Notes: generated by a model from the sequence alone, not told the origin. 64,000 nucleotides of DNA from Epiperipatus broadwayi (GCA_028023455.1 JAQFVV010000004.1:620001-684000), one strand, 5' to 3'; shown: positions 10,881 to 57,658, counted from the first letter of the stretch. Numbers and translations: made by a program.

Positions 10881-11080
10881 TTTTGTTTTATTCTATGAAC
10901 TATTTTTCATTTTGATTTTCTTCCTACATTTTCACCATGTTATATAGTCATTATCAAGGATTATTCTTCTTACTTTCATATTTGTCTAAGCAAGAATAAG
11001 AATCCTTGACAATGATCATATAATATGATCAAAATATACGAAGAAAATCTAAATGAAAAATGGTTCATAGAATAAAACAA
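10881..11080. mobile_element. Foldback element (about 90-bp arms), each arm with a degenerate U3-A8 hammerhead
   Basis: ttgttttattctatgaac...caaggattattctt is mirrored by aagaataagaatccttg...gttcatagaataaaacaa; arms read tcc-TTGA(T/C)AA-t-stemII-(G)AAA. Confidence 0.7.
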
Positions 11081-11420
11081 TGAAAAGAAAAAGTGTGTGA
11101 AATTAATGGACTGTATTTGGAAAGAAAATGAAATAATTAATCAAGTATTGATTTTATTAAATCATACATTTTATGCTTTATCTGGTCAGTGTTTTTATTT
11201 TAACATGATTATGGATCAAATTTTAGTTTTATGTTTCTGTACAAATAAGCTTAAATTACACACAACACAATTCAATTTCAATTGGATTCTTTGTAATTTA
11301 TTAAAAATAGCAATAATAATTAATATTTTTGTCTTATTAAAAAAAATACTCAGTTTTAAGCAAGAATGTTACTGAGTAATTTTTAAAAAGTAATATAAAT
11401 ATGAAGTTAATATATAACTG

Positions 11421-11660
11421 TTAATGAAAACATCAACAGGAAAAATGGGTTTTTAAAAAATATTCAGCGTTATTACTGCCTAGCATGCTTTCAATATAAT
11501 ATGTATATCATAATCATATTCGCAGTTTATAATAATGAGTCATATTATTATAAGCCATCAATGTGATATACATGTTATATTGAAACCATACTAGTTAATA
11601 ATAAAGCTGAATAATTTTTTTAAAAAAACTACCTTTTCTGTGGATGTTTTCATTAACAGC
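11421..11660. mobile_element. Foldback element (about 100-bp arms) with decayed hammerhead remnants
   Basis: ttaatgaaaacatc...ctagcatgctttcaatataat is mirrored by tatattgaaaccatactag...gatgttttcattaa; minus arm reads GAUAUA/UAUAUU-GAAA-GCAUGC-UA. Confidence 0.6.
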
Positions 11661-11856
11661 CATGTATTACATTAATTCAGAAAAGAAGGAAATTATTTAT
11701 ATCACATGACCACCATCTCTTATACTAGCACATAATTGTTATTAAACAAGGCAAAACTCTCCATACAGTAGTGCCATCCTGTGCCAACCAAAGTAATCAA
11801 TGGATGCCAAAAGGCTTGTGCATAAAATCCCTATCTAGTGCCTACTTATCCAATAT

Positions 11857-11896
11857 TCCCAGACTAGTTTCTGGCTTGTAGCCTTCATCGGTGAGG
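11857..11896 (-). ncRNA. Minimal type-I hammerhead ribozyme, family A copy 1 (U4>C)
   Basis: CCUCA-CCGAUGA-A-GGC UACAA GCC-A-GAA-ACUAGU-C^UGGG: stem I pairs, palindromic stem III, GUC triplet. Confidence 0.75.
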
Positions 11897-11948
11897 AGCC
11901 TTGGATCTGAGAGCACTGCACCCTATCTAGTGCCTATTCATCCAATAT

Positions 11949-11988
11949 CCCCAGACTACTTTCTGGCTTGTAGATTTCGTCAGTGAGG
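11949..11988 (-). ncRNA. Minimal type-I hammerhead ribozyme, family A copy 2 (core intact, stems II and III damaged)
   Basis: CCUCA-CUGACGA-AAUC UACAA GCCA-GAAA-GUAGU-C^UGGGG. Confidence 0.7.
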
Positions 11989-13155
11989 AGTAGGCACTAG
12001 ATCGGGATTTTATGCACAAGCCTTCTGGCATCCATTGATTACTCTGGTTGGCATAGGCTGGCACTACTGTATGGAGGGTTTTGCTTTGTTTAATAAATTA
12101 TTTATAGTTGAAATATGAAGCTATTAAATATTACTTTTTTATGTTCTAGCTAAATTTTAATATTTTCGTTTTGTAATAAATAATATCAAAGTTATCAAAT
12201 TTATTATTTCAATCTAATTTTAACTGACAGTATTATTGCATTTGATATTATTCTTTATATTAGGGCACTAAAATCCTTTCTATAAAGCTTTTATGCATTA
12301 ATTCCTATATATATAGATTTCATTCTAATTTAATAATTTATAATTGATATTTTATTATATATGTTTATAGTAGTATTAGAATAATAATATGGCTAATAAT
12401 TAACTTTTTTGTTATTGGTAAACATTTATGTATAATAATAAATTTATTATTAATTGTTGAGGATTCTTGGTCTTTTTAAAATATATATATATTAGGGGGG
12501 GGGGTCAATTTTCCATTGGCATCATAAATATTGTTATAGTATTTTATAATTTAAAATAAAAACAAAAAAAATATTTAACTTTTTAAAATAAACAGTTAAA
12601 CATCCTAATATTTATAATCTTATTTTATTTTATATATACACTAGATTAATAATATTATAAGGCTGGTTCTTGTTTAAAAATGAAGTTAATTCAAATAAAT
12701 TATAACATACATTTATGTGCTGGGTATGTGTTTTTTGTAATAAAGAGATATTATATTTACAAATATATTTTTTAAATAATGTTATGCAATAGATTTTTTT
12801 TTATCTATCCAGACATTTTTTCATTTTTCCTATTGGGAAAATTTCTGTAGATAACTGTAGACTAGATAATACCTGACAGCAGAGAAAAACAGAATATAAT
12901 AATCAATGATCATATATTTTGGAAAAATAGCTTTTGCAAAAAATACTTTGAAATAATGCAAACATAAATTTGAAAAAAAATATTTAAAAAAATACTACAT
13001 TTTCAATTTTTCTTAAATTATTCTTATTATTCAAACAATAAATATTATTTTATTACTTTATGAAAGTAATAGATTAGCTGCTAAATAAAAATATTTAAAA
13101 ATTTTTAGTATTGAATATATAATAACTACTTTTTTCTATTGCATTGCCAAATGTG

Positions 13156-13717
13156 TACCATATAATACTCAATTGTCCAAACACTTTACTACTTTTACAG
13201 TGCTTTATTTTCCATTCTTTTCTATAGAACTGCAACATAATATAAAAATATAAATATATATGAACATATAATTTACATTCTATATATACATCTTATAATA
13301 TCTTTTATTTTACATTATTATTATTATTCATTTCTTACCCTTTTTACCTTCTATATTTATTAATCACAATATTTCCTATACATATATTCACACATACACA
13401 TATGTACACATACATGTATATGTATATGTGTATGTGCATATATATGTGTGTATATGTATATATGTATAGGAAATATTTTGATTAATAAATATAGAAGGTA
13501 AAAAGTTAAGAAATGAATAATAATAATCATGTAAAATAAAAGATATTATAAGATGTATATATAAAATGTAAATTATTTGTTCATGTATATTTATATTCAT
13601 ATGTTTGTATTATGTTGTAGTTCTGAAGAAGATTGCTGGGGCAATCGAAACTGGAGGATGGAAAATAAAGCATTGTAAAAGTAGTAAAGTGCTTGGACAT
13701 TTGAGTATTATATGGTA
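13156..13717. mobile_element. Foldback element (about 240-bp arms, AT/AC microsatellite loop), PLE-pLTR-like; hammerhead kept only in the right arm
   Basis: taccatataatactc...atttcctatacata is mirrored by tatgtataggaaat...gagtattatatggta; the left arm lacks the HHR core. Confidence 0.85.
13617..13660 (+). ncRNA. Hammerhead core with perfect stem II; cleavage triplet appears mutated
   Basis: CUGAAGA-A-GAUUGC UGGG GCAAUC-GAAAC-UGGAG. Confidence 0.65.
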
Positions 13718-13815
13718 TTGTATATATATATATATAATTAATAGTAATAAAATCATGTTGTATGTCACATGACATACAACATGCAATCTGGCATCATTTT
13801 TCTTTTTTTGAATAA

Positions 13816-15711: not shown

Positions 15712-17667
15712 CAGCCATACTCAGCCCTTTTTTTTTTTTGGAAGGGAGGGAGGACATACATGTGTGTTTATGTTACATGGGACACAAGGCAGTCTGCAAC
15801 ATAGTACACTATATCTCATCATATGATGTGTAAAAAAGTAAACCTAAATGTATTCAAGTGTGTATTTAAAAATTACTGTGACTTTTGATGTTGAGACAAA
15901 CTTTTGATTGTAATTAGCTAGATACCACCCTTAATACATTTTAGAATAGGATAATTTGCAATGGTAGATTAATATGAACAACATGAGCAGCATTTGGACA
16001 CACTTTTGTACAATCTTGTATTTTTCAAGCACTAATTTCCAAAATTCAGCATACTTTTTCCCTTCCTTTTTTTTAAAAAAATTCTCCGGATTCATATCAT
16101 TTTTGAGTTCAGTGAATTCATCAAATAGGTTTGTATAATCATATTCCAATGCAGCTATTTGTGTAATAATTGTTGTTTTTAAATACTAGGAATTTTCTAC
16201 TAATATAATAGACAATTCTTAATGTTTTTTAAATCTTGAAACTTACTCTTAAATCCCTTCTACAAGGCAGTTTTTTAAGTTCCAGGGATTTTCTACTAAT
16301 AACAGACAGTTCTTGACATTTTTTAAACCTGAAATCTGTACTTAAATCTATTGTATAAGGAAACTAAATAATTTGAAATGATTGCATAGTCTTCTGGGAT
16401 ATTATCAATACCATCTTGTTTAGCTTTTATTATGTTTGGGCTATGTATGTGTTCTAAACACCTATATATTTATATGTAGGGAGTAAAGTTAATAGTAGAA
16501 ATATATTTTGTTTAATAAAATATATTAATTTTATAAAAAGTAATCAGCACTAAATAGAGAGATTTTACTTATGATAAAATTTGATAATGAATATTCAGTG
16601 CTTAATCATTTATAAAACTAACCAATCTATTTTATCTAGTATAAAATCTCTCTATTAAACATTGCCTATTTTTAATATAATTAATATATATTTTATTAAA
16701 AACATAAAATATATATCTACTGTTATTAACTTCTTATAATATATATATATTTGCTTTGAATCTTGACTTAGTAGTTGTAAAATTAAGCAGTAGTTAGTTT
16801 TGTATTTCCTTGTAACAGATGCTTAGTTTTTCATTAATTAGATTCTTAATTAATTAATAATTTATTTTAATTAGATAAAATGATTCATTTCTTATATCTA
16901 TTTTTACTACATAAATATAGGTACATGTAAATGTGTGTGTGTACACAGTACTTGATTCGCTATATGTGAAATTATTTTATTCTCAATCCATGAACACTGA
17001 TTGAATTTGCCATGTTTTTTTGTAATATCACATAGAAAGACTAAAAGTCACCGACATCCATCATTTTCAACTTTTCTGGAAACTTTATTGTTTTGTTGCA
17101 AAAATAATTTCTTGCCTACTAAAAATACTGATATAGAACTTTTTCTCTGCTTAGCTATCACACTAATGTAATGTGAAGGAATGTTGCTATAATTACTGTT
17201 TATTTTCACATCTTATTAAAGTCCAGTGAGGAAAAAAATCCTTAAATGATTTGTGTTTCATAATGATGAATGATATTATAATTTTTTAATACCACACTTT
17301 CATGATAAATCACACAAGTTGCCAAACTATGTTTAATTTACACATGGAAACATTTCCTTTGCAACTGTGTTAAAACACTCTATTTTCATTGGATATTTTT
17401 TTGTTTGTATTTTGAAAACACTCCTGCCATTGTAAGTAATTAAATTATAGTTTGACATGAAACAATACCTTTTGAAACAGGCACAGAGCTTGTCACACAT
17501 TGAAGTAATTTTGCAAAATAAAACAAACAAATGTATCATGAATGCTATCTCTGATTGAAGTGAGGTGCGGGTAGGTGCAGCACATGTTAGTATTTTAAAA
17601 ACTTAGATTAATGAGTGTGTGTTTTGAGCACATAAAAACTTGATGGGTCGCAGATTGAGTATGTCTG
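15712..17667 (-). mobile_element. Internally deleted hAT DNA transposon (Buster/SPIN/GTF2IRD2-like) with TIRs and 8-bp TSD
   Basis: TIRs cagccatactcagcc / gattgagtatgtctg (12/15 match); flanks ctttgatc / ctttgatg; ORF 15931-16149 (EFWKLVLEKY...LLMLF..YHCKLSYSKM) resembles the hAT C-terminal dimerisation domain; ORF 17333-17539 (LCAC...YNL) resembles the N-terminal zinc finger. Confidence 0.85.
16485..16735. repeat. AT-rich foldback (about 90-bp arms) nested in the hAT element
   Basis: ttaatagtagaaatatatttt...aatagagagattttact is mirrored by agtataaaatctctctatt...tatctactgttattaac. Confidence 0.65.
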
Positions 17668-17829: not shown

Positions 17830-19617
17830 TCTATATTAAAAGTGTGCATACACATATTGAAGCCGCAGTAGATTTGGATCACAATTTAGTAATGGGAAAA
17901 TTGCAGATATCTTTTAAAAGAATATAGGTAACTGAAACAAAATAGAAATAGGCAACTTTTAAGTTAAAAAAGGATATTAGAGAAAATATATATATATAAG
18001 AAAATAAACTTGTAGAAGTGTAGTAATTAAGTATGCAGAATTACTCCAAAAAAAAAAAATGTTAAAAATATTGCAATAAATATAGGAATATCTTTAAAGA
18101 AATAATTTTAAAAAATAAAAAAATAAAAAGCCTTGTTGTTTGGAAGATCAACAATAAAATTATATAGGGAAGGTAGTAGTATATGAATTCTGTAAAAAGA
18201 AAATTGTACGAAGACAGCAAGGGAATTGAGATGAGAAAAAAATACAGCTAGAAGAAAAAAGTTTAGAAAGTGATTATAATGAGATAGAGATTTATAAAGA
18301 GAAGATAATTTTGATTTAATGTACAGCTAAATAAAAAAGTGTTGCAAAAGCTGGGTTGGGTAAACGAAATTGTATCTAAAGATGGAAATGGTAAATTATT
18401 ATTTAAAGTAGGTGTCAAGCGTTGGTGGTCGAGTGGTCAGCACAGCTGCCTTACAAGCAGTTGTTGCGGGTTCGCCGATGCTTTGACACATGGAAAAAAA
18501 AGTAGGTGCATTGCAAAAATAGAGTAACCCAAATGATTTTTATGACAGAATTCTCAAGCCATTATTTGTATTATTTAGAAAAAAACAGTTAAGCAATAAT
18601 AAAAGAAGTTGGAAAACATTAATTAAAATTAAAATTGGTAAATACAAAGAGTTAATAAGATTTAACTTATGAGGCAAAAGAACTTGAGAATATTAATTGT
18701 TGTTTGTAATCTTGTTTATGATGTGGAAAATGACCTATAGATTATTTTATAACAGTTACAATTCTAATAAAAATAAAAAATAAAAATTTAAGAAGTTTAG
18801 AACAATTAGTTTAATTTCATGCATGGATAAGATTCTATTGATAGACATTTTTATCATATTCCTATGTGAAGAACACTTTGTATTTAGAAAAGATAGATGG
18901 ACAAGAGATGCTATTGGTATAATGATAATTTGTTGAGAAATAAAGAGACTTGGATTAATTATCGTTTCATTGATCCTGGAAAGATTAAGTTACTTTGTTG
19001 ATTATATTGAAAAGAAATGTCCAGAATGGGAAAGGCAAATTATAAAAAACTTGTGTATAAATCAGAAATTTTTTCTTAAATTTTTTTTATTAAAGAAATA
19101 TGTATAGGAAGAGAAATAAAATGCACACTCATATATATGTGTTGTGTATGTGAATATTGAAAATTTTTAGTGAGAAAATCAAATAAACAAAATATTAAAA
19201 CTGGAGTGACAAACTGAAAGCATGTTCTTCAGCAATAATATTTGACTGTGAAACGCAGACAATAAGTAATAAAATTAGGAACAAATTGGAAGTCTTTGAG
19301 ATGGAGAAGAATAGAAAAAATCAGTTGGATGAAAGAAGTAAATAAAAAAAGAAGGTAAATTGAGAAAATCAGAAAGAGAAACTGGATTGGATATATATTA
19401 AGAAATTAAAGTTTAATGAAAGATGTTTTTGGAGAGGATGGTGAGTGGAAATAAGAAGAAGGGTGGAAAAGATTGAAAGTGTTGGATGATATAAGAGATG
19501 GGAAAAATGAATGAGGAGCTGGGCAATGAAGAGAATGGAATGGAGAAAATGAATAAATTGATGATGTGACAGCCCTTTGAACCTATCCATGGGACCGAAT
19601 ACTATTAATTGATTGAT
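17830..19617 (+). mobile_element. Degenerate RTE LINE (same family as 7064-9960), interrupted by a SINE
   Basis: DLDHNLVMGK (end of APE) at about 17870; CETQT and EVFEM (RTE C-terminal motifs) at about 19248-19305; 3' end acctatccatgggaccgaatactattaattgattga matches the 3' end of the first copy. Confidence 0.8.
18415..18500 (+). mobile_element. tRNA-Gly-derived SINE (anticodon reads TAC), with TSD aaagtaggtg
   Basis: tcaagcgttggtggtcgagtggtcagcacagctgccttacaagcag...tttgacacatgg(A)n; flanking duplication. Confidence 0.85.
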
Positions 19618-20044
19618 TTATTTGTCTGTTCTGTAAACCAAAAATGGACTATTTAACTTATTCCCTAGTTTCTAAATAAGAAAGGCAGATTAAACATTAG
19701 TATTATATATGAAAAGTTAAAGTATTATAACTGTTCAAATTTTTTCATAAGTAAATAAATCTTTCTCATAAAATTCCTTATTTAAAAACTAGATAATAAG
19801 CTGAAGTGGTCCATTTTTAGTTTATGGAGGGGTCAAATAAATATTGTTGGATGATGAATTTTCAAATTGCAGTTCCAGTTTTTAATTGTTTAATTTTCTT
19901 GTTAATGCCATTGCTGAACTCAAAAAATACAAGGATTATCTCATGAAAGCTTTCAATATTTACATCTATAAATCTAAAAAAAATTTCAAATATATATATA
20001 TATATTGTAATGACATATAAGGAACACCAAGAATGAGCAGTATC

Positions 20045-20143
20045 TTTTTTTTTTTCTCATGTGTCATAGCATCAGCCGGGAAGCGAACCCGCTAACCCGG
20101 GACAACTGCTTGTAAAGCAGCCGTCGCTGACCTCTCGACCAAC
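20045..20143 (-). mobile_element. tRNA-Gly-derived SINE, 5'-clipped
   Basis: Reverse complement of ttggtcgagaggtcagcgacggctgctttacaagcag...gatgctatgacacatgag(A)n; flanked by tatcttttttt on both sides. Confidence 0.85.
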
Positions 20144-20734
20144 AATATCTTTTTTTAAATCAATGTTAAATAATGTTACATTTATATATAAGGCAACAGC
20201 AAGATGTAAGTTGTTTAAAATCCGTCTTAAAAAAGTAACTATTTGAAATCATAATTTTAATCAATTATATGTATTAACAAATTTTAAAGTAATAAAATAA
20301 ATATGAACACAGTATCAGATAGATAGTACTTAACTAGTTTGTTTAAATGAAACTTTAGCCTTTTCTAAAATAGTTTTTTTAAGTGTTTTTTTTTTTTTAA
20401 AAAAGAGCTACTTTTAAAAAAGAATAATAACACTTAAAACAAGATTTATATTCTATGATAAGTTATTTTGAAAGCTATAATTATATTTAAAACTTTTCAA
20501 AAAATTTCAAAATGGGATTAATTATAGATAAAATAAGCTTTGTTATTGTGATTCAAAAAATGCAAAGCGATAACAATTTTTTTCTAGAATGAAGAACTGG
20601 TTCCAGCATGGTGGCTCCACTCTTTAGCTCTAATGAATTCTAACTGATAGTTAAAAATTCTTATGGTTGAATGCTAGGATTTTCCAATATAGATTTTGAA
20701 TAAGAGAATGAGGTATTTACATATTAAACCGTTT

Positions 20735-21000
20735 TGCAATGGCAGAATGCCTTATCTTTTTTCAGCTGGGGGGTGGTAGTGGTGGTAGGAGTGTTTGCTA
20801 TGGCATTCTACCATAGTTGTAACTTCTTAATACGACCTGAGAAAAAAGTCACAGTTTTTAAAAATGTATTAAAAAGTCACAACCACAGCATTCTGCCATT
20901 GCAAATACCCCCCCCCCCCAACTGAAGAAAGATACAGCATTTTGCCATTGCAAATACCCTCCCATCCCCAACTGAAGAAACATACAGCATTCTGCTGTCA
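20735..21000. repeat. About 47-50-bp tandem unit (2.5 copies) plus an inverted copy
   Basis: cagcattctgccattgcaaata(c)n-aactgaagaaa(g/c)ata repeated over 20886-21000; inverted ttgcaatggcagaatgc...ttcagctggggg at 20735-20772. Confidence 0.75.
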
Positions 21001-22779: not shown

Positions 22780-24330
22780 AATGAAATAAATCTAAGGGGC
22801 ATCAATTCTCCTCTCATATTTTTTTATTTACAAAAATAAAATACTCTATAAAGATTTTCAAAACTTCAGCAGTATCTTAGCAAATTTGGAAATTTCAATA
22901 AATTCATTTTCTAAACTTTCAGGATTTTATATTTAGATCAGCATATGAAATTCTGTATCATTTTGCTTTTTTACTTTTAGCTTTACAATGTATCTATATA
23001 ATAACTCATCATTAAACAATTAATTAATCAGATTAATTTGATTTTAATTCTTAATTTATCCCCATCTATAATTATGGGGGATCTCAATATGTTCTTTTCT
23101 GATTTTGCAGCAAAATATTTGAATCTGATTAGTAGAAATCTTATAAGAGCAGGTATCTTTTCTGCTAATTCTATCTTTTATATATATATATATTAAAAAC
23201 CACTCTTCCTTAATTGATGTTATTATATTTAATTTACTTGCATTTTATCTTAAACCTTTCCTCATTCCTATTTGTTCTCTATCTAGTATTCAGTGTTATG
23301 ATTAGATATGCAAGATCAGTTATTACTTTTACTTAATAATATTACCAGATTTCTTGTTAAGTGTTCTATTTCACATAGTGACTGAAATTTATATTTTATT
23401 TAAAAAAAAAATATTTCTCTTGATCAAGTAAAGGGCTGGTTTTCCTTTATCAACATTATGTCATCTATAATTAGTTTTTTTGTTCAGAAAAATAAGCATC
23501 CTAAGAGACTCATCAAAGAATTAAATTCATTCTTTTAAACTAAATAGAATTTCATGTAAAATACTTCTTTAATAGATTATGCTCCCCAAGCAAATTTATA
23601 GGCAGTCTCAGTTCATATTGCTTGGCTAGTTTTAAACTAAAAAGTATAAGATTTTTTTAGCTAATCTTCACAACTGATACAAAGGTTATATCTGTTTAGT
23701 GCTCCATTATAGGCCAAAAAATATCATCTTTCTCTATTCTCAAAAATTCTAATTTGATTGTTCAAAAGATATGTTGTCTTTTTTTTCTTTAAACCACACC
23801 TATGGAGGCTTAATTTTTTGAAGTTCTCTTCCTTTTTTTTTTATTTGTTATCACCAAAAACAACTGTATAGTCACAAAATACAAGATTGTTATAAAACTG
23901 AACTTTTAGGAATTCCTAAGTTTTTATTGATACACTTACTTTAGTTATTTCACTATTTCTATCATCAATATGCTATCTTAAAAACAGATTTAGATTGTCA
24001 ATCAACTATACCCAATGACTGTGGTTCCTTTTTTAAGAAACATTCTTTCTTTCTCTTTGGTAATTTGAGACTAATTTCAGCTTTACCCAATTATAAAAAA
24101 TATTGAATTTTTCATCAAAGATAAAATTCAATCTTTTATTTTTTTCCCCATTTCATAGTTTCAATTTATCAACAAGAGCTGCTCCAATTCTAAAGGACTG
24201 ATGCTGTCTAAAATAATTATAAATAATATTAACCCAAGTAAAAAAAGGCAGTTTTTATTGTTATTCAGTTGGACATGTATTGACAAATTCTTCTAGCATT
24301 AATGTATATACTGGCGAATTTGCTTTCAGT
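22780..24330 (+). mobile_element. Degenerate L1/Tx1-like LINE fragment (APE endonuclease into early RT)
   Basis: INLRGINS (about 22786) and PSIIMGDLNM (about 23060-23090) are APE motifs; the rest is riddled with stops. Confidence 0.55.
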
Positions 24331-35254: not shown

Positions 35255-35271
35255 TATATATACATTAAGCT

Positions 35272-44702: not shown

Positions 44703-44819
44703 AAGGAGAAGCCACAATACATCACATCACATCTGTTTAAATATTATTATTAAACCGTTATAATTAATTTACAAATTATCATTTAATATTTAAATACAAG
44801 TATATTATATATACTTTTG

Positions 44820-45655
44820 ATCTATATGTAATTAGAGGGGATTTGAACCCAAATTTTTAAGCTACTTTTGATCAGCAACTCTATCTTATACAACCAATAT
44901 ACATGATTACATATATGCGAAAAAGATAAATGATCTCCAATATATGTATTTCATACTGAACCAGTACTCATTAGTTGGCCCAAATCATTATCTTCCACAT
45001 ACATATGTAATCAATCAGTGCTCTGTTTATATTAAGATAGCAGTTCTTCAAACTTTAATCTCCAGTTTTTGAGTTGTTCATATCATTGAAAATCTGGTGT
45101 TGGTATGTTCAAAACCCTTGTTTTCCAATTTTCTTGTCATACCCATGTTGACCGTAAGTCACTCTGACTCCTCATATGCAGGACCTTAAGCCCATTTAAA
45201 TTCACAGAAGAGGGATGGGCAGAATACAGGCTGAATATGTAATATTTAAATATAAGTATATTATATATACTATTAATCTAGATGTAATTATGAGGGATCA
45301 AATTGACTTAAGGTCAACATGGTTATGACAACAAAATTAGCAAACAAGGGCTTTGAACATGCCATCACCAGATTTTCAATGATATGAATGGCTGAAGAGT
45401 TGGAGAGTGGAGGGATTGAAGCCTGTCCATTAAAATTTGAAGAATTACTAGCTTAATATAAACTGAGCACAGATTATATATATGTGTGGGAGATGATGAT
45501 CTGGACCAACTAATAACTGCTGATTCCGCACACAATACATGTATTGGAGATCATTTTTCTTTTTTGCATGTACGTAGTCATATATATCGATTGTATAAGA
45601 TGGAGTTGATGACTAAAGGTAGCTTGAAAATCTGGCTTCAAACCCTCTAAATAAT
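44820..45655. mobile_element. Family B head-to-head palindrome (about 400-bp arms) with mutated HHRs at 44935-44980 (minus) and 45503-45549 (plus)
   Basis: Left arm is a minus-sense and right arm a plus-sense copy of the 24361-24780 element; cores read CUAAUGA and CUAAUAA; tails gggttcaaatccc / ggcttcaaaccc point outward. Confidence 0.8.
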
Positions 45656-46429
45656 TATTTATTAATAGTTGTAGCAGATTAGCAAAAATAAAATAGCCAA
45701 CTAAAAGCTCAGCCTTTCTAATATTACTCTAAAGAGAAACAATAAAGGAAAAAACAATGTTTACCAAGTTATTAAAATATCAAGTGATGAGAAGTGGCCT
45801 TTTTGTTTTATCCTCTGGCTATGAATAATCATTTTCTTAACCAATTGTAAAATAGTTGGTTTAGTTACTTGAAGAAAAAAAAATCTTAATTTTGCTTGGA
45901 ATCTGAAAAACTTCGAAATTTTTCTTTAATTCGAACCCAACCTTAATGTCATTATTTTTTTTTATCTTTTAAATATATGATTACTATAAAAGTAATAGTA
46001 GTAATAATAACAGTAAATGTATATGTGACATTATGGTGAAAATACAAAGATTTTTTATTATGTTTAAAAAAGGTTTTTTAAAAAAAAAAAAATTAAAAAA
46101 AAAAACGAAAAGAACATGATATTAATTATTCTGCTAAATTACAAAGTTTTTATGGAAGAAAAAATTAAAGTGCTAAAAAGGAAAGTTATTGTAGTTTGAT
46201 ATTCGTCAGTATTATTAAATATACTAAAAGTAAAAATAAATAAATATTAATTTGCCATTATCTTTGCATTTACAATCATCATTTATTATTTGAAGAAACA
46301 GTTCAAGTTATGATTACATTAATTTAAACTGAATTTCTTTTATGTTTTTTTTCTTCTAATTTTAAAACAGCAAACATAATTTTAATGTAATGCATTGCCA
46401 TTTTCATGCTTCATGTTTTATTAACTATC

Positions 46430-46700: not shown

Positions 46701-46959
46701 AACTGTGTGCTCCCCCTCCCCTTTATTTTGAGATTTATCAAAAGATAATATTGTATATTTAAATAAATATGTGTGTATATATGTATGTGTGTGTATTTTT
46801 TTAATGTGTTTATGTATTATATATGAGTTAGTATAAATGTAAATATATGTTTACATAAATATTGTAATATTTTAAGCATTTTTTAAATATATAATTGAGT
46901 TGCTCTTATTTGGATCATATTGTTTCCAGTGTAGAAAAAATGTAAACAATATAATCTAT

Positions 46960-47265
46960 AGGGTATATGAGCACAGACTTTCACATGATCCACCCCTCTC
47001 CACTCTATCTCATAAAACTGATACACCCGAACACATATATGTTGAAAAGATAAATAATCACATATATGTATTTCATGCTAAACCAGCAATCATCAGTTGG
47101 TCCAGATTACCATCTCTACACATATATGCTATAAGTGCTCAGATATATATTAAGATAGCCAATCCTCATACTTTAATGGACAGGCTTCAATCTACTCCAC
47201 ATTCCAACTCTTCAACTGTCCATCCAATTGAAAATCTGATGATGGAATGCTCAAAGGCCACCCTG
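46960..47265 (-). mobile_element. Family B copy with HHR at 47058-47102 (core intact, stem I damaged)
   Basis: GACCAA-CUGAUGA-UUGCUGGUUUAGCAU-GAAA-UACAUAU-A-UGUGA; the rest aligns to 24400-24650. Confidence 0.75.
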
Positions 47266-47297
47266 AGGCCGAGATTTCTACTGAAAGGTGTATTTAT

Positions 47298-49490
47298 TTA
47301 AGAATTACTCCCTTTATTGTTAATCATTTCTAACATATATATTTTGTTACAGTTATAATAACACGTGTAAACTAGTATGGCCATTCTAACTTGAAAGAAA
47401 GAAGAGGTAGAGGAAAAACCTCTTTTAGGAATGAAATTTGCGATAGCTATATTAACCAATTTATGGAACACAAATACATCCATATATAGAACATGCTGCT
47501 CTATTTTTCTGCTTATTTGATATATGTGTCTTTTAATTTTTTCATTAGAAAGCTTTTCTTTCTGAAATATTTCAACCCTATGTCTAATTGTAGTTCTTAT
47601 ATGTATTCTGTTGTCAGACAGATCTTCCCAATTGAAGCAATCAATACTGCACTTTTTTACAATTTCATTGAGGTATTTCTTATAACAAAGATAGGGTCTA
47701 CCACTTCCATGAAAACTGTGCTCAAGTTTATCACAAAACATCCTTTAGTCTTTCATTGTTCATTCATTTTATGTGTCCAATCCAACAAAAGTGTCATTTT
47801 ATAGTAGTGGTCTCTAATATCACATCCAATATGTTAAATAAATTGATTGTTTTTATGATTCTGCCATTGTATTTTTAAAATTTATAATACATCCTTAAAT
47901 AAGTTTTCTAATGCTATTATATGGTGTCCAAATTTCATATTCATACAATAAATTAGATACAATAATAGCCCTATATATAGCTATCTTAGTGGCAGTTTTT
48001 TCTGTGATGAAATACTCTTTTAACTTGTTTAAATCAGTAGCATCAGATTGGAGTCTGTGTTGTACTTCAGCATTTTAAGTCCACCTTTCTATTAATAAAA
48101 CTATCAAGGTATTTAAACTGGTTTACATTTTCAAGTCGATAATCATCCATGCTAATAGTTGCTGAGGATTTTTCTTCCATCACTGATTGATAAAGAATTT
48201 CAATTTTTTGAACAATAATTAGTCTTTTTATTTTACAATCAAAATATTGAATGCATTGCATAAGTCATCATTTGAACTGCAAAAAGTCATACCATCATCA
48301 GTATACTATAATTCCAGAGGCCAAGAAATCTTTGTTTTTGCTTTTAATCACTTTGAACCTGTACTGTATCTTTATTCCTGTTGTTCCCTCTAAATATTTT
48401 CAAAGATTGCTGTCATAAAAATTGAAATCAATGTTGGAACAAGTAAACATTCTTGTTCCTTGTTTAATACTAATCTTCATTTTAAATGCCTCACATTTTC
48501 CACTTGTAGTAATAATGCTTATTCTCATTCTATCATATAGAAATTGTAATACTTGAATAAAATTTGGTGGACAACTAACTGATTTCAAACAATGTGCTAG
48601 ACTTATTTTACTAATTGAATTAAATGTCTTGATCAAATCAATAAAAGCAATATGTGAACCATTCTTTTGTTCCTGACACATTTCTCACATTTGCCTGGTA
48701 ACAAATTGTCTAAAACCATTCATCTACAGCTGGAAACAACCTATTCAACAAAATATTGAAAATACTTTTTTTTTGTAATAGATAATAATGATGTTCCATG
48801 ATAATTATAACAATCTTGTCTATTTTTCTTGTTTTCCCTAAGATCAGGGGGCACAACTTCATTGGTCCATACCTAAAACATTCCACTATTTTTGAAACGA
48901 ATATATTACTATCATGTTTTAAAACTTCCCCAGATATTTCATCAATACCTGCAGCGTTTCCATTTGTAAGATTACAAAGAGCTGTTTTGACTTCATTAAG
49001 CTGAATATTGTTGACCAAATCTTAATGAGAAAATAAAATGGGTATGATTAAAAATCATCATCTCAATTTTTGTATCAGATATTCAAAAAGTGATTAAAAT
49101 ATTCCTTCCACCTTTTTAGAATATTGTCATTTCTGGATTTAATAGGATTATGGTACTGTGTCATGTCCATTTATTGCTTTCATTGCATCAAAAGAAGATC
49201 AGTGAATGTCAGTATGTTCTTTACAGTTTTAATCCACTAATCATTTTTAAGCTTTGTCAGTTACAGAACTTTTACCTTCAGATCTTTTATTTTTATTATA
49301 AAGTTGCCCACTTAATCAATTATTCTGACAAACAGAAAATGCCACATATTTCTTTTAATCAAATTACTATTAATAAAATCATTGTCAGAAAATTGATCAT
49401 AATTTTTTTTTTAGTGAAACCAAGAATACATTTATTTATATTCATAACATATTACTTAAAAGAATTCCATGCTTCAGTAATGTGATAGTC
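47298..49490 (-). mobile_element. Degenerate RTE LINE (second family), RT to C-terminus
   Basis: EVKTALCNLTNGNAAGIDEISGEVLKH, IAFIDLIKTFNSI, KQG, YTDDG (about 48287-48303), LENVNQFKYLDSFI, GRPYLCYKKYL...NWEDLSDNR. Confidence 0.88.
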
Positions 49491-49735: not shown

Positions 49736-50791
49736 AGCATAATTTAGTTGTCTGGTGAAAACACGAATTCACAAAAAATAAAATAATGATCAATTTTTAT
49801 TATTGAACAATTTTATAAAATTGTTTTAAATTTTTTTGAGGCTTCATATAAATTACACATATAATTAAATTTTAGGGAATTATTTAATTGACAATGTTAT
49901 TTACAAGTACAGTTTTTATTAGTAATTTTTAATCAGATGTTAATCCCCCATCTACACATGTGCTATTTAATCATATTACTGGCTTTACAATATTATATAG
50001 AGTATAGAGGAATATTTTGTGCTTTGGTTTGAGTTTCCTGCATAGTCTATATAACATCATAGTGCTAGTAATATGATTCAGCAGCACATGTGTAAACAGC
50101 TGATATGATTAAAAATAATTATTATATGTAAATATATGTAATTCTAGATAAATGATTAGTCTTTATTAACTTTTTAACTGATTCATTATTATACTAGTTT
50201 CTGGACTAAAAAAATGTATTTTTTTAAACTTATTTTTATTATATATTTATTCAAATGTGAAAAACCGCTTAAAATTTTTTGAAATATTTTATTAATTTAA
50301 CAATCTTGAAAATAAATATGCATTTGTACTATAGTTAATGAAATGTTGAGATTAAAAATGGGAGGAGGAGGAGGGGACAATTAAAGTTAAATTCTGGTCT
50401 TTATTTACATTTGTACAATGTCATTACTTATAATACATAAAGATTATATAAAGAAGAATGTATCCTATACTATAATTTATAAACCCAATTTGGAAGATCT
50501 ATATACAGTACACAATACATTGTTGAATTACATATAAAAAAATAATTTAGTGCAAAAAAATGAAACCAAAATCATTGTAATCATCAGTTTACATTTTGTT
50601 AAAAAAGGGAAAAATAAAGACAATGGCAAAATTATTTGGAAGTTTTACCTTTTTGAAAAAAATTATATTAATATTTTTAATGAATAACTTTAGATAAATA
50701 AAACCATAAAACAGGCAAACTTGCCTGTCTGACTTTATTCATTTGCAGATAATAAATATTTGAATGACTTTATTACTCTGTAGGTCATAAG

Positions 50792-50913: not shown

Positions 50914-53833
50914 GTAACTGAATAAATAATTATCAAGCAGGAGATAAAAATATAATCTCCTAGGTTTAATTTTAATTTGAAAAAAATGGAGCTTGGGTGA
51001 AATAGGGATAAAAATAAAATGGCACCTTAAAAACTATTGGATTAAGAAGATAAAAGTTATGGTTTCTAAAGTTTAGAAAGAACCGTCTCTATATATTAAT
51101 AACATGTATATTTAAAGAAGATATTTGTCAGCATATGATGGTTGTGATGGTATTTCTATATTTTTGCAGTCTAGTTCATTTTTGTCTTGACTACATAGGG
51201 AAAATATGGCCTCAATATGAGAAAAGCTCATCCTTGTTTATTTTTTATTAGAAAGTCTAACTTTAATTCTGGGAACCAGCATTTGAATTTTAATGATGAG
51301 ATAATTACTGAAATGTAGAACTGAGGAGCATCTTCTGAGTTTGGTGGATATAATTTAGAAATTCTAATTTTCTACTGTGTTGCAAATCACTGATAGTAAT
51401 TTTAATTTCAGAGTATCTTCTACTTTCATAATTACAGTTCTTTTAATTATATCAAAAATATAATTCAGTTAGTTATATACTTAATAAAAGAATGTCAAGT
51501 CATTCAAGATTAACACTACAAATCCAGTGATCATTTCAAATAAGATTTTATTTATTTAATTTTATAAAAAAAATAATAATAATAATTGATTTTTTTTTAC
51601 ATAAAGTATTTTAAGTTTATATCCATAATTACTTAATTAAATATTTCTTAATCCCTGAGCAGTTTTAAGCTGCACGCAGATGTCTTTCTTCATTTTTTCA
51701 AGACTATATGGTGGAATGAAAGTTTTAAATATATATATATTATAACGGTCACAGTGTGGGTGATCGAGTCTTACTGTATCTGCACTACAGAGCGCCACTA
51801 GGACATTTGAACCTAGAAAATTTATAGAGTAGGCAGATACACGCTGTTAAAAAATCCAACTTTTATTTTATTGACCGTTTGCCCTTGCCACTAGCTCATG
51901 GAGTAGCAGAGGTTTTAAATTATATTTATTAAAAAAAATAAACTAGATCACTGCCAGTACTAATAACACAACTGATTTTATTAACTCATATTTAAAATTG
52001 AGGAATAAAATTTATATTTAGATTTTAACATTAATTTTTAAATTTAAATTACTATTTTAAATAGACCGCACAGATGGACATTTTAATAATATTTTACTTA
52101 ATCATGTTGAGTATAGATAGGCTACATAGATTTCTTACTTAAAAAAAAAACTTATCAAGACACTCATTCAATCTGACTAAAAGTTTGTAGCCAAACCAAC
52201 GCCTGCTTCCAGATGTATAGTCGCAACCAATGCAATATGAAGATGCTAGCATAAAATCGCACTGACAGGAATGTGCATCTGACAGCGTGATATTATTTGA
52301 AGGACATGATCCTCATCCAGTACAAGAATGGGCATCTGTCTGGCGAAGGAATCATGTATATAAATTAATTAAAGAGTGCTATGTATGGGGGAGAGCGGTC
52401 TTTTCTGCCGACTTATAAATCCCTGTCCATAGAGCTAGAAAGGGTCAATGGCACAGGAAATATGTCTGCGACCATTGCAATGATATGACTGCCTCTTTGG
52501 GGTCATGCATTCAGTTGGGCACGTTGCCCTGTATGCTAAACACGCTTCACATTACATTGATATAAACACCTATATATCCCTCCACAAGCATCGTCCTAAC
52601 TACGAAATAAATAGCCTGAAATTAACCCCATAAAATAAACATAAACGAATTTAAACTTAGTTATTAATTTTTATCCATGCAGCTATCTACACCCAACTTT
52701 AATTTAATACATTTTAATTAACACTTAACACAAAAAAAAAAAAGAAATGGAAATGATTGCTTAAACAGATGCATAAAAAAAAAATTACTAATAATTGATT
52801 TGAATTCTTTAGGCCAGATAATAGTTTTTATTTTCAGCTATTAATTGCAAATTTAGGAAAAGTTCCTATTAGATAAATACAAGAGTTCATACTTTACGGA
52901 TTGAGCAGATTTAGAGGTCCATCTTCGTGATCACTTTCATAGATTGTTTGTCCTTCTTTGAAACGAAACCACCACTTGCCATGCATTTGGTCAGGAACTG
53001 TTATCCAGAGGCCTCAGCTGGTTATCCGGAAATTAAATTTATTGCAGACTTCTACATTGCAAAATCTGCAATACAGCTACGGTTCATATATATAGCTTAA
53101 TAGTCAGCATCTAAGACAACAATTATAATAATCTCTCAATTTAAAAATTTGGGGTTTTATACTTTTATTAACCTCTTATCATCAAATCTTCGGATTCAAT
53201 GAGCAAGATGTCACTAATCCTCTCGTGTTTCATTTATGGTCCGTGCTGTCATTTCGTGCTTGCATTGGTCATTTAATTTCTTTTCATTCTCTTACCATTT
53301 AATTATTCGAGTGCCTCAAGGGCTAGTGTGCTTTAGAACAATCATTTAATTAATAAAACAATCATTTCCATTTTCTAAGACTATAGAAATCAACACTATT
53401 TCTATTTTCAAAAATATCAAATCTTTACATCGTTACTTTTTTTACAAAAAAAAAATACTTTCAAATACTTTTACTTTTAAAATAGTTTTTAAAGTTTCCC
53501 ATCTGTGTGATATATATACGTTAAACAACTTTAAATTTTCAATTTTTAAGTTAAGTTTTTTTCTTTTTAATAAATCAATTTTTATTTACGATCTTTTTAT
53601 TTTCATTTTAAAATAATGTAACGGCATTGGCATTTTATATACCGTTACAATATATATTTAAACCAAGAGAGATGTAGTTAAATAAATGCATCAATTGTTT
53701 TATAATAGATACTTGTCAAATAAATGTTGATAAATTATTTAATTTTGGACTATGGTGATAGCTTTATTTGTTCATACAATTTACAACTTTCTTAAACACT
53801 TTATCAATGCTATTTTTTATATCAATACTTTCT

Positions 53834-53875
53834 TCTAACAGTTTCGACTGTCCTGCAGTCATCATCAGAGCTACA
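53834..53875 (-). ncRNA. pLTR minimal hammerhead (core intact)
   Basis: UAGCU-CUGAUGA-U-GACUG CAGGA CAGUC-GAAAC-UGUU^AG. Confidence 0.75.
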
Positions 53876-54503
53876 ATATTCAAATATATAATTATATAAT
53901 TAATACACTTATATACATATTCATATACATAATTAAATACACAAAATAAAATATGCATTTTAACCTGACCATTGTAAATAATCATTTTCCATTTTATTAC
54001 TTTACGCTTAAATAATTTTATCCACATTTATTTTATATTACTTTATTTTATTTTCAAAAAAATTATTTATTATAATTTTAATTTTAAAAAACATTAACTT
54101 TTATTCTATTATTTAATACATATTATAGTCTTTTTACTTATATTTTTAATAAACTTCTAACCTTTTCTTATTTTTATTAAATATTTTATAATTATCAATT
54201 AACTTTTTCCACATTACAAATTACTTTTTTACATTACAAAAATTACCTACCTCTTTACAATCCTATTTCTAAAAACCCAACTGACAAAATTTTCAAAATT
54301 TGTATACTTGTTTAACACCTCCCTCTATCATCATTTTCTTCATCTTTATTCTTTTAACCTTTTTCAAATTCAAACTATTATTAATAATAATTGTTTATAA
54401 AATTATTGTCTTTACCCAAAAATCCCTATTAAGATTTTGTTTTATATTCTTAATCAATATTGCCTCTTTAATTTTCCTATCCCTTCTATTTTTGTATAAT
54501 TAA

Positions 54504-54818
54504 TCATTTTATACTATCTTTCTCAAACCTATGACCTGTTTCTAATGAATGCAAATAAATAGGTGATCTCTTATCATATTTATGTTGAATTAATCTTGTA
54601 TAAATTGAATTCTTTGTTTCTCCTACATAATTAGTTTTTATATTTTTACTTTTACATGACTTGTATTCAATTTTATATACTCCATTTATGCATTTTTCTA
54701 CTTTTCTCACATATTTATTATCTAATATATTAAGTATATTCTTTCTTCTTTTATTTACTATCTTAAATTTTATTACATTATTAAACTTTTTATTAATTGT
54801 AATAATTATTTTATTCAT
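54504..54818 (-). pseudogene. PLE GIY-YIG endonuclease fragment (truncated by a frameshift)
   Basis: Provided ORF translation shows the GIY-YIG motifs. Confidence 0.85.
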
Positions 54819-54861
54819 ACTTTTTACAATACTATTATAAGTTTTAATACCTATATATTAT

Positions 54862-55173
54862 CTATTTTATTTTTCTACATACTATCCCATTATTTTTCTT
54901 AAATTTTTCTTCCAATCTTCTTATACTTTCTTTTCTAAGTTTTTCTGGATATTTATTATCTTTAAACTCTTTAATTATCAATTCTATCTGTTTACTATAA
55001 TCTTCATTTGAGCAATAATTCCAAGCTCTATATATTATTGAATTTATACTACTTTTTTTATATTTAACATCTATATTTGATTTCCAATTACTTATATTGC
55101 TATCTACATTAGCCTTTTTATATACAAATGTTTCTATCCTGCATTCGCCATTTTTATATAACTTCTTTAACAA
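54862..55173 (-). pseudogene. PLE reverse transcriptase thumb/linker fragment
   Basis: TFVYKK...SNISNWKSN...RAWNYCS...NKYP pattern typical of PLE ORFs. Confidence 0.8.
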
Positions 55174-55342
55174 AATATCTAAATATGATAACTTATTATC
55201 ATATTTTATTATTATAATAATAGCATTGTAAAAGTATGGATAAAATAATTATTAGAATTAATAAAAAGTTTAATAATATAATAAAATTTAAGATAGTAAA
55301 TAAAAAAGGAAGAATATACATAATATATTAGATAGTAAATAT

Positions 55343-55660
55343 GTGAGAAAAGTAGAAAAATGCATAAATGGAGTATATAAAATTGAATACAAGTCATGTA
55401 AAAGTAAAAATATAAAAACTAATTATGTAGGAGAAACAAAGAATTCAATTTATACAAGATTAATTCAACATAAATATGATAAGAGATCACCTATTTATTT
55501 GCATTCATTAGAAACAGGTCATAGGTTTGAGAAAGAAAGTATAAAAATGATTAATTATACAAATAATAGAAGGGATAGGAAAATTAAAGAGGCAATATTG
55601 ATTAAGAATATAAAACTAAATCTTAATAGGGATTTTTGGGTAAGGACAATAGTATTATAA
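55343..55660 (+). pseudogene. Inverted copy of the PLE GIY-YIG domain, C-terminus intact
   Basis: ...HSLETGHRF...RRDRKIKEAILIK...LNRD. Confidence 0.85.
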
Positions 55661-56170
55661 ACAATTATTATTAATAATAGTTTGAATTTGAAAAACGTTA
55701 AAAGAATAAAGATAAAGAAAATGATGGTAGAGGGAGATGTTAAACAAGTATAAAAATTTTGAAAATTTTGTCAGTTGGGTTTTTAGAGATAGGATTGTAA
55801 CAATGTAGGTAAGTTTTGTAATGTAAAAACTAATTTGTAATGTGGTAAAAGTTAATTGATAATTAAAAAATATTTAATAAAAATAAGAAAAGGTTAGAAG
55901 TTGATTAAAAATATAAGTAAAAAGACAATAATATATATTAAATAATGGAATAAAAGTTTTTTTAAAATTATAATAAATAATTTTTTTTTTAAAAAAGTAA
56001 AATAAAGTAATATAAAAGAATTATTTAAGAGTGAGGTAATAAAATGGGAAATGTTTATTTATAATGGTCAGGTTAAAATGTATATTTTATTTTGTTTTGT
56101 TTTATTTTGTGTATTTAATTATATATATGAAAATAAGTGTATTAATTATATAATTATGTATTTGAATATC

Positions 56171-56212
56171 GTAGCTCGGTTGATGACTGCAGTACAGTCG
56201 AAACTGTTAGAA
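56171..56212 (+). ncRNA. pLTR hammerhead, core mutated (CGGUUGA)
   Basis: gtagctcggttgatgactgcagtacagtcgaaactgttag mirrors 53834-53875. Confidence 0.6.
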
Positions 56213-56341
56213 TAAAGTTTTGATATAAAAAATAGTATTGATAAAGTGTTTAAGAAAGTTGTAAATGGTATGATATGTAAAAGTAGAAATCAATATATAG
56301 GAAAAGGAAGAAGAGCTTTATTTGTTCTGAAATATTTCAAG

Positions 56342-56462
56342 TTTATAAGTCTGCCTATAGTAGTATATCTTGTAAGTTAAAGGATAGTACAAAATTTCCT
56401 TTGTTTCCAATGTATATTCCAGTAAATGATCAAGTTAACCCTGAGAATAAATTATTTCATAG
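56342..56462 (+). CDS. Candidate exon (YKSAYSSISCKLKDSTKFPLFPMYIPVNDQVNPENKLFH)
   Basis: atatttcaag| acceptor; 121 nt open; donor uncertain. Confidence 0.4.
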
Positions 56463-56520
56463 GTCTTTGTTTATGCTCTGTAGTATCCAGGTTTACTTCA
56501 CACATAGTTAGTTTGAGGTA

Positions 56521-56816
56521 TTCTATTACATTTTATTTCTTTTATATGAATATGGTTTTCTATTACATTTGATTTCATTTCTCATCATATGTAAACAGTG
56601 TATATTACATTTCTTGTCCAATGATTGGGACGATTTCATCTTTCTTCATTTGGATACTGCATTCTATTTCATTTGTCACTACCAATTAAGGCAATCAGAT
56701 GTTCTATTACATTAGGCCTTGCAACATGTGGCTTGACTATTTGATTGGTGGTTGTGAGGTATTCACGTGAGTTCGATTAATTAATTGGTTAGTGGTTATA
56801 TACATTCTATTACATT
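56521..56816. repeat. Spaced array of a 12-bp motif TTCTATTACATT (about 6 copies)
   Basis: Copies at about 56521, 56558, 56601, 56662, 56702 and 56805, separated by unrelated sequence. Confidence 0.65.
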
Positions 56817-57098
56817 TGCCACCCAATGTTTAAGGCCAGGGCATCTTTTCATATGTAGATATGCATACTTTTACAATATGAAAGATATTTTTTGAGAGGC
56901 ACTATGAAAAGATAAAGTGAATAAAAACTGAGGCGAAATATAGTGGAAGATATTTAAAGAAAAAAGATACAGATTCTCTTACTGTGATAAATTGTTAGAG
57001 TAGGAAAGATTACATTTAATTCATCTTATCTTGCTTGGATCTCTGTTTTGCCAAAGCAGGTACTTAAATACTTGTAAACATTAAAAACATAAATAAAT

Positions 57099-57658
57099 AA
57101 TCAAAATTACCCAAATTCACAACTCAACCAGACTAGCCAAGAAAATAAACTCTAGAACACTACCAATGGTTTCCCTGCTAGTAGCAGACTTTTCATATGT
57201 AAAGAACAATAAAATAACAACATACTTAAACTAAACATTACCCACAATTCCACTTACTTCCCATACATCCTTAATATTAAAATAACTTTTAAATAAGTTA
57301 ATCGCTTCAGAATCATAAAATTTTAATAATAAAGATTCTTTAATTAATTCTTTTTATTTCATTTCTTTCAAAGAAGACAACCTTAGCTTCATCAAAATTA
57401 ATAGGCCACACTATTAAAGAATCTTTATTATTAAAAATTTATGATTCTGAAGCGATTAACTTATTTAAAAATTATTTTAATATTAAGGGTGTGGGGGAGG
57501 TAAGTGGAATTGTGGGTATTGTTTAGTATAAATATGTTGTTACTTTATAGTTCTTTATATTTAAGAAATCTGCTTGTAGCAGTGAAACCATTGATAGTAT
57601 TTTAAAGTTTATTTTCTTGGCTAGTCTCATTGAGTTGTGAATTTGGGGTAATTTTGAT
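57099..57658. mobile_element. Foldback element (about 245-bp arms) with decayed hammerheads at about 57158-57205 (minus) and 57552-57600 (plus)
   Basis: Mirrored arms; CUGC-loop-GCAG-N-GAAAC-CAUUG(G/A)U-A in both; 5' cores eroded. Confidence 0.75.

Follow-up and report, generated by a model that had tools for sequence, protein, structure and literature searches.

The window analysed here, a stretch of 64,000 nucleotides from Epiperipatus broadwayi (JAQFVV010000004.1:620001-684000), is AT-rich eukaryotic DNA (about 25% G+C) in which long inverted repeats with hammerhead ribozyme motifs are crowded. These hairpins, ten in number (H1-H4, H7-H10, H12 and H13), are most probably fold-back insertion products of Penelope-type target-primed reverse transcription acting on several families. 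The source families would comprise an autonomous-type Penelope-like element (PLE) for H12, families represented by PLE tails (H4, H7 and H13, probably also H1 and H2) and two retrozyme-like families termed A and B. The attribution to PLE machinery had been made in a preliminary description of the same DNA and is upheld by the coding sequence of H12, by five insertions that combine a target site duplication (TSD) with a tail on one side, and by the traits that the ribozyme motifs share with the minimal hammerheads (min-hammerheads) of PLEs.

The ten inverted repeats of the preliminary description were all recovered in place, with arms that are 78% to 98% complementary; the weakest is H8 (30420-30702), whose arms measure about 38 nt. 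Each of the ten holds a hammerhead-derived segment, either in the loop or in an arm, there on the strand that reads outward, as had been described. This amounts to at least ten hairpins in 47 kb, drawn from at least five sequence families. Three further inverted repeats were found, H5 (16452-16760), H6 (20733-20954) and H11 (49878-50157), in which scans for ribozyme motifs and for TSDs found neither.

Target site duplications and one-sided extensions

TSDs were searched for at the 13 hairpins from tight arm ends with one mismatch allowed; a first scan, with BLAST-wide boundaries and exact matches, had found none. Five of the 13 hairpins, belonging to three families, show a direct repeat whose one copy adjoins an arm and whose other copy is separated from the second arm by 34-43 nt, and the TSD sequences are unrelated to each other. 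At H3 (11689-12106 including the TSD; repeat 11739-12096) the duplication measures 13 nt (11689-11701 / 12094-12106) and the 37-nt extension is found on the left arm only (11702-11738). The two arms of H4 (13108-13728 including the TSD; repeat 13156-13717) are flanked by 14 nt (13108-13121 / 13715-13728) with 34 nt of extension on the left (13122-13155), and those of H7 (26484-26808 including the TSD; repeat 26495-26757) by 16 nt (26484-26499 / 26793-26808) with 35-43 nt on the right. H8 (30410-30752 including the TSD; minus strand) has a 13-nt duplication (30410-30422 / 30740-30752) and 37 nt on the right arm only (30703-30739), and H12 a 16-nt duplication (53758-53773 / 56312-56327) and 38 nt of extension (56274-56311). 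In a random control 1.3% of 1000 interval pairs had a repeat of at least 12 nt in such a geometry, so that five of 13 would arise by chance with a probability of about 5e-7. The extensions of H3 and H8 are homologous; they are therefore 3'-terminal sequence of the element itself, which only one of the arms carries.

This signature matches the one published for Penelope. PLE insertions were described as a 5'-truncated copy adjacent to an inverted 5'-truncated copy, with a hammerhead in the pseudo-long terminal repeat (pLTR) or tail and an optional one-sided tail of 30-40 bp (Craig et al. 2021, PMC8557442). In vitro, a purified PLE protein was found to cut and extend the two strands of the target, reverse transcription beginning at two internal positions that bracket this tail (Frangieh et al. 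2024, PMC11167929). Each hairpin would accordingly stem from a single insertion event.

The hairpins resemble miniature inverted-repeat transposable elements (MITEs) in being small, non-coding, hairpin-forming and dispersed. Unlike MITEs, they lack a short fixed TSD, each arm is an entire inverted copy and not a short terminal repeat bordering a core, one of the arms is longer by 34-43 nt, and the same sequences also occur solo. The preliminary description had proposed a check for TSDs of the TA, TTAA or 8-bp kind; none was found at any hairpin, the duplications being instead of 13-16 bp and accompanied by the one-sided extension. These features argue against DNA-transposon MITEs or generic palindromes in which hammerhead strings would have arisen by chance in AT-rich DNA, a very improbable explanation to which the motif statistics also speak (see below). 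H5, H6 and H11, in which neither motif nor TSD was found, would agree with such an explanation; H12, which encodes a PLE GIY-YIG domain, speaks against it.

The H12 element

H12 is the only hairpin with coding sequence, and only the 3' part of an element is present. The fold-back (53758-56327 including the TSD, both strands) consists of a 5'-truncated PLE, whose main copy runs from 55229 to 53772 on the minus strand, and of a shorter inverted copy (55230-56273, plus strand) in which the hammerhead core is mutated (~56175-56205). The two copies abut head-to-head at 55229/55230 with their tails outward; the arms are 91-98% complementary and enclose a unique centre of 405 nt. An open reading frame (ORF) of 103 residues in this centre (54862-55173, minus strand) was assigned to the linker between reverse transcriptase (RT) and endonuclease (EN), as an exhaustive phmmer search followed by Pfam annotation of the matches retrieved proteins with the order RVT_1, matched region, GIY-YIG. 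A second ORF (54504-54818, minus strand), which reads ..GVYKIEYKSC..NYVGETKNSIYTRLIQH.., matches the GIY-YIG portion of these proteins in pairwise alignments (E 1e-4 and 0.015), and its look-alikes in the Atlas are mostly GIY-YIG clusters. A word-based protein search with the H12 ORFs gave no match. Judged by these alignments, H12 is a 5'-truncated EN+ PLE.

Contigs of three RNA-library runs and of one DNA run join 53870 directly to 54251, skipping 380 nt (54250-53871, minus strand). The skipped segment has GT-AG borders (AAAGAG/GTAGGT...TTGTAG/CT) and is followed immediately by CUGAUGA, its end lying 2 nt before the ribozyme core. The tail therefore has a spliceosomal intron that ends at helix I of the ribozyme. 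Intron-less copies of the H12 type were found in DNA contigs and RNA-library contigs from three species. A retained intron meeting the ribozyme, together with intron-less genomic copies, was described for Penelope, including that of D. virilis (PMC4209133; PMC8557442), and the intron of H12 resembles the D. virilis one in its 3' end at helix I. The 2.5-kb Penelope palindrome with GIY-YIG that had been proposed at this locus is thus confirmed by the alignments of both ORFs and by the intron at the ribozyme.

The min-hammerhead of the main copy occupies 53868-53837 (minus strand), with predicted cleavage between 53837 and 53836, beyond which the tail continues to 53772. Run X9, an RNA library of a related organism, yielded 25 contigs that match the window from 53838 rightward and are heterogeneous leftward, and 8 further contigs diverge likewise at 53833; copies or transcripts of the H12 tail family lose their likeness within 1-2 nt of the predicted cleavage site 53837/53836. 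None of the reads, available as assembled contigs that do not record molecule ends, starts or stops at a predicted cleavage site. Tail sequences are present in RNA-library contigs of three related organisms, and the contig data show that 52000-57900 consists throughout of high-copy repeats.

Like the EN+ PLEs Penelope and Poseidon (Evgen'ev & Arkhipova 2005; PMC8557442; PMC11167929), the insertions of the window combine an RT-EN linker followed by a C-terminal GIY-YIG domain, strong truncation at the 5' end, to which an inverted and likewise 5'-truncated copy is joined, a hammerhead in the tail or pLTR and, in some cases, about 30-40 bp more at one end. They differ from typical EN+ PLEs in that most are only non-coding tails, form hairpins of 200-600 bp and occur at high density.

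Proposed route to fold-back insertions

The following steps would account for the hairpins. A GIY-YIG endonuclease would cut the target in a stagger of 13-16 bp, the cuts being deduced from the observed TSDs. Both cut strands would then prime reverse transcription on the 3' region of an element RNA, so that two cDNAs grow inward with their 3' tails outermost. The tails-outward layout is observed directly, and both-strand priming would have the backing of the published in vitro work. Two initiations at alternative start sites about 35 nt apart would leave the terminal extension, as it is seen, on one arm only. Both cDNAs would finally halt early at arbitrary points and be joined centrally, which would yield arms of any length, in insertions that range between 200 bp and 2.5 kb. 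The hammerheads would be passengers of PLE tails or retrozymes, about 65-155 nt from the 3' end, and would come to lie in both arms, or in the loop where the inverted partner ended before reaching the ribozyme.

A palindrome whose tails face outward around a unique centre (405 nt in H12, 142 nt in H3) would also fit the snap-back self-priming of a single cDNA, or a palindrome-forming rearrangement after insertion. A snap-back copy should however share its terminal nucleotide with its template, yet one arm regularly has 34-43 nt more of the element 3' end, and this one-sided extra fits separate initiations at the two start sites found in vitro (PMC11167929). A later rearrangement is made less likely by the single TSD that encloses each hairpin. 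Either of these origins is accordingly held to be quite improbable.

Detection of hammerhead motifs

At its gathering scores Rfam reports no hammerhead in the window, and at permissive thresholds its sole hammerhead signal is a sub-threshold match to HH9 at 40418-40493 (22.7 bits). It overlooks even a textbook minimal hammerhead at 24463-24506 (minus strand), and its silence is therefore uninformative for minimal motifs. Structural descriptors were instead written out explicitly, with dinucleotide-preserving shuffles as controls. A strict descriptor of the full type-I hammerhead was matched once (0.017 expected), and one demanding exact catalytic boxes, a perfect helix II and GAAA was matched four times (0.055 expected). 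A covariant descriptor, which allows a C3-G8, U3-A8 or A3-U8 core and requires G10.1, a helix II of at least 5 bp and then RAAA, found six motifs against 0.22 +/- 0.51 expected and a shuffle maximum of 3. Decoy cores run on the native sequence gave 0-1 match each. A loose descriptor with one core and one helix mismatch showed no enrichment (6 observed, 3.7 expected); the signal therefore lies in well-formed motifs and not in a cloud of near-matches. The A3-U8 match of H2 is by itself not above chance (1 against 0.57), and this motif is credible only through its position, orientation and palindromic helix III.

Five of the six descriptor motifs fall inside hairpins, which make up 11.4% of the window (p ~1e-4), so that the enrichment of hammerheads in inverted repeats, put forward earlier as a check, is present. 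All five read outward. Alignment of repeat copies added 13 decayed homologues, giving about 19 hammerhead-derived segments; the ~13 decayed ones lack the full set of conserved catalytic boxes, CUGANGA (or its 3-8 covariant) and GAAA around a helix II, and are counted as relics only. The earlier estimate of about 20 hammerhead-like motifs in 64 kb holds when relics are counted, and shrinks to six under the covariant descriptor. The sole complete canonical type-I hammerhead is that at 24463-24506, outside the hairpins; the other 18 of the ~19 have core or helix defects, or a helix I of just 2-3 bp. Nearly all of the hammerheads would thus now be inactive relics.

The unenriched loose descriptor and the lack of an Rfam hammerhead above threshold are what chance strings in AT-rich DNA would give. 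The stricter descriptors are nevertheless enriched 27- to 80-fold, and the motifs are homologous across copies and display PLE-specific traits. With the TSDs and the H12 coding sequence, these results leave the chance or DNA-transposon explanation largely refuted for the ten hairpins of the preliminary description.

Two kinds of ribozyme

Two kinds of motif were distinguished: type-I hammerheads with a palindromic helix III in families A and B, and a second type in the homologous tails of H12, H4, H7 and H13. The second type follows the consensus uagYu-CUGAWGA-w-GAYUG..CARUC-GAAAC-N-GU-H. Between A9 and G10.1 stands an unpaired A or U, positions 10.1 and 11.1 form a G-C pair, helix I has only 2-3 bp and helix II 5-6 bp, and differences between families in helix II keep the pairing (GACUG/CAGUC, GAUUGC/GCAAUC, UCUGCU/AGCAGG). 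A palindromic helix III (15.2-16.2 or loop 3), which would allow dimeric action, is evident as UACGUA in family A, as GCAUGC in H2 and as CUAG in family B; the H12/H4/H7 type has only C-N-G. A type-III arrangement, a hairpin-closed helix I and a long helix III were each tried for the H12/H4/H7 motif, and none was consistent across copies. Among the six descriptor motifs, the extra base between positions 9 and 10.1 is present in five, and the 10.1-11.1 pair is G-C in four and G-U in two.

In H4 the right arm carries a motif of the second type that has an exact core with an extra A and a 6-bp helix II, GAUUGC/GCAAUC (13623-13650, plus strand); the core of the left-arm copy is deleted. H7 has an exact core in its right arm (26662-26688, plus strand) and a decayed copy in its left arm (26565-26592, minus strand). 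H13 (57091-57667; repeat 57099-57658) has 242-nt arms that are 88% complementary, with tails homologous to those of H12, H4 and H7; relics lie in both arms (~57150-57185, minus strand, and ~57575-57605, plus strand), with helix II TCTGCT/AGCAGG and GAAAC retained and the cores mutated. Beside these motifs, the centre of H4 (13343-13502) is a palindromic, (TG/CA)-rich, microsatellite-like sequence that attracts spurious sub-threshold Rfam microRNA matches (mir-3149, mir-5014 and others).

H1 (10881-11080) is a non-coding fold-back with 86% complementary arms. Its right arm holds a min-hammerhead relic with a U3-A8 core (11006-11034, plus strand), an extra base after A9, G12 changed to A and a 7-bp helix II whose first pair is G-C, and its left arm holds a more strongly decayed copy. 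In H2 (11421-11660), whose arms are about 78% complementary, the left-arm motif (11489-11517, minus strand) combines the A3-U8 core with an extra base, a 6-bp helix II, GAAA and the palindromic GCAUGC helix III; the copy in the right arm has a deletion in its core.

PLE min-hammerheads were characterized by the extra base, the G10.1-C11.1 pair, a long helix II and a short helix I, of 2 bp in D. virilis (Cervera & de la Pena 2014, PMC4209133), and pairs of min-hammerheads on opposite strands, 100-700 bp apart, were reported in the same year (PMC4209133). As read from their sequences, the motifs of the window have these defining traits: the unpaired base between A9 and G10.1, the G10.1-C11.1 pair, the long helix II and short helix I, a helix III that is palindromic in some motifs and minimal in others, the U3-A8 core variant and the opposite-strand pairs 100-700 bp apart. 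Unlike the published min-hammerheads (PMC4209133), H2 has an A3-U8 core that is not among the variants described there, and the helix I of the H12/H4/H7 type, for which cleavage is predicted, is only 2-3 bp.

Retrozyme-like families A and B

Families A and B have no ORF; the family A unit measures about 420-456 nt and the family B unit 92 nt. A solo copy of family A (24320-24740, minus strand), outside any hairpin, carries the canonical hammerhead accaa-CUGAUGA-GUGCUG..UAGCAU-GAAA-UACGUA-UA/uuggu at 24463-24506, with a helix I of 5 bp, a helix II of 6 bp and the palindromic UACGUA helix III. Cleavage is predicted between 24468 and 24467, and the predicted fold of 24460-24509 recovers helices I and II. 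The other three family A copies have core or helix changes. Two of them form the arms of H10 (44781-45673; repeat 44820-45655), with a position-5 change on the left (44937-44978, minus strand) and a decayed motif on the right (~45500-45545, plus strand). The third is a 5'-truncated solo copy (46902-47276, minus strand) with a decayed hammerhead at ~47062-47116. It adjoins a remnant of an unrelated RT of a long interspersed nuclear element (LINE). Family A copies share a common 5' end. A 57-nt direct repeat in the left arm of H10 (44784-44840 / 45240-45296, minus strand) recurs 456 nt apart, and this copy is therefore longer than one unit (~1.13 units).

The neighbouring LINE-type RT (47298-49018, minus strand) is decayed, shows the motifs NAAGIDEISGEVLKH and AFIDLIKTFNSI and a weak RVT_1 match, and is unrelated to PLEs. 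The family A tail at 46902-47276 was considered as a 3' UTR of the adjacent ORFs and rejected, since these ORFs are LINE-like and an upstream sequence common to the other A copies is absent here. Three smaller observations concern family A. Its 3' tail (24363-24430) contains a tRNA T-arm-like string, GAGTTCAAATCTCC, and a 68-nt piece of the tail is found inverted at 43204-43271, beside a copy of a tRNA-related repeat. A 17-nt segment near the 5' end of the unit, AGAAGAGGGAYGGGCAG, is inverted in the left arm of H10 (45202-45236) relative to the solo copy (24760-24790); flanked by short inverted ATTTAAAT-like strings, it is possibly capable of inversion or prone to hairpin formation.

In family B the motifs occupy the loops of H3, H8 and H9, where helix I runs via an internal loop into the long hairpin arms, a layout that resembles HH9. 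The main copy of H3 is on the minus strand; its arms are 108 nt long and 94% complementary, and the loop contains two tandem 92-nt type-I units, one with a position-4 change (11856-11897) and one with helices II and III broken (11948-11990). The central unit of H8 has lost its core (~30540-30580, minus strand). H9 (40284-40583; repeat 40301-40564, plus strand) has 60-nt arms that are 83% complementary and a family-B-like type-I hammerhead with a disrupted core in its loop (40418-40493, plus strand), which is the segment that aligns to Rfam HH9 over its full length. A 5'-truncated solo copy (44580-44700, plus strand) starts inside hammerhead helix III, a few bases before the predicted cleavage site.

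Metazoan non-LTR retrozymes are held to depend on PLEs (PMC7229834; preprint 10.64898/2026.07.22.740005). Families A and B look like such retrozymes (Cervera & de la Pena 2020, PMC7229834; Li et al. 2026, preprint) in their AT-rich, ORF-less sequence with one type-I hammerhead per unit, in copies longer than one unit and in their proposed dependence on PLE enzymes. Unlike the published retrozymes, they are found here one or two units at a time, within fold-backs that have a TSD and a tail on one side, rather than as long tandem arrays; no such array of either family was found in the window, and the two units of H3 are in tandem. The 92-nt unit of family B also lies below the published range of 170-400 nt.

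Hairpins as a probable mode of insertion

The preliminary description had seen in these hairpins a distinct class of ribozyme-bearing MITEs, non-autonomous elements transcribed and mobilised as hairpins whose RNAs cleave themselves. The one layout common to many hairpins of several families would agree with this, as would the very high summed depth of E-family hairpin arms and centre in a DNA run and the valid element 3' tail with which a fold-back would end on each of its strands. The same families are nonetheless also found solo (24320-24740, 46902-47276 and 44580-44700), and related hairpins differ in inner junction, loop content and arm length, which makes the hairpin a mode of insertion and not a heritable form of the element. 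The arms of H3 are 94% alike and only 70-87% similar to other family B copies, as expected if arms are born together at each insertion. Since there is also no fixed short TSD and the architecture was already published (PMC8557442, PMC4209133), a separate class is not sustained, and we regard it as improbable.

The predicted behaviour of the RNA also speaks against it. Folding prediction for the H7 RNA gives an almost perfect duplex (-132 kcal/mol, z = -18) in which the ribozyme core and the helix II strands are paired with their antisense copy. A hairpin RNA should thus sequester its arm ribozymes in a duplex of about 130 bp rather than permit cutting. Only the loop-located family B units remain free in the predicted folds, and these carry core or helix defects. 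With cores buried and loop units defective, self-cleaving double-stranded RNA (dsRNA) hairpins, also suggested earlier, are therefore unlikely at these loci, most motifs of the window having disabling changes.

Several points weigh against an origin of the hairpins by Penelope-type target-primed reverse transcription. Pfam run directly on the AT-rich H12 ORFs detected neither GIY-YIG nor RT. The TSD scan gave none for H2, H9, H10 and H13, and an ambiguous result for H1; the hairpins without a TSD are perhaps too old to retain one, or arose in another way. The H10 arms resemble other family A copies at least as closely as they resemble each other, which lends no support to a single-event origin of that hairpin. 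For the families other than that of H12, the link to PLEs is suggested by the insertion signature and the ribozyme type, and the priming by both strands is deduced from end products rather than observed.

Other repeats in the window

A tRNA-related repeat is present in seven copies (18414-18501, 20046-20186, 32151-32282, 35082-35262, 38928-39085, 43340-43516 and 60939-61103). Within the last of these, 61006-61077 was identified as tRNA-Gly(TCC) with 42.7 bits, in which ARAGORN concurs; the other copies are weak tRNA matches. The repeat is probably a tRNA-Gly-derived family of short interspersed nuclear elements (SINEs), or a tRNA gene with SINE relatives. The window also shows strong GC and AT skews of opposite sign, with a GC skew of -0.36 to -0.43 at 6001-10000 and of +0.38 at 18001-20000. 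The segments 19238-19612 and 7065-7468 form an inverted repeat pair and may belong to a strand-biased repeat family.

Implications

Layout, type of ribozyme, one-sided tail, intron and opposite-strand ribozyme pairs are all published PLE features, and no current view is overturned. What is new are the particular families, their density and the clean set of fold-backs with TSD and tail, which includes ORF-less hammerhead families. As both strands of a fold-back end in a sense 3' tail, read-through in either direction would give RNA that a PLE RT could use. It is conceivable, if doubtful, that fold-backs act as self-reinforcing bidirectional source copies and as sources of dsRNA for small-RNA silencing of the same families; if true, hairpin loci are not dead scars. 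For annotation, hairpins of 200-600 bp would be miscalled as MITEs or as microRNA-like hairpins, and the signature of TSD and one-sided tail lets such hairpins be assigned to Penelope-type retrotransposition. The window provides genomic support, derived in vivo, for the priming by both strands and the two RT start sites about 35 nt apart that were found in vitro. The mobilisation of retrozymes by PLEs was previously argued mainly from co-occurrence and phylogeny, and ORF-less hammerhead families with the PLE signature would constitute direct structural evidence of their mobilisation by PLE enzymes.

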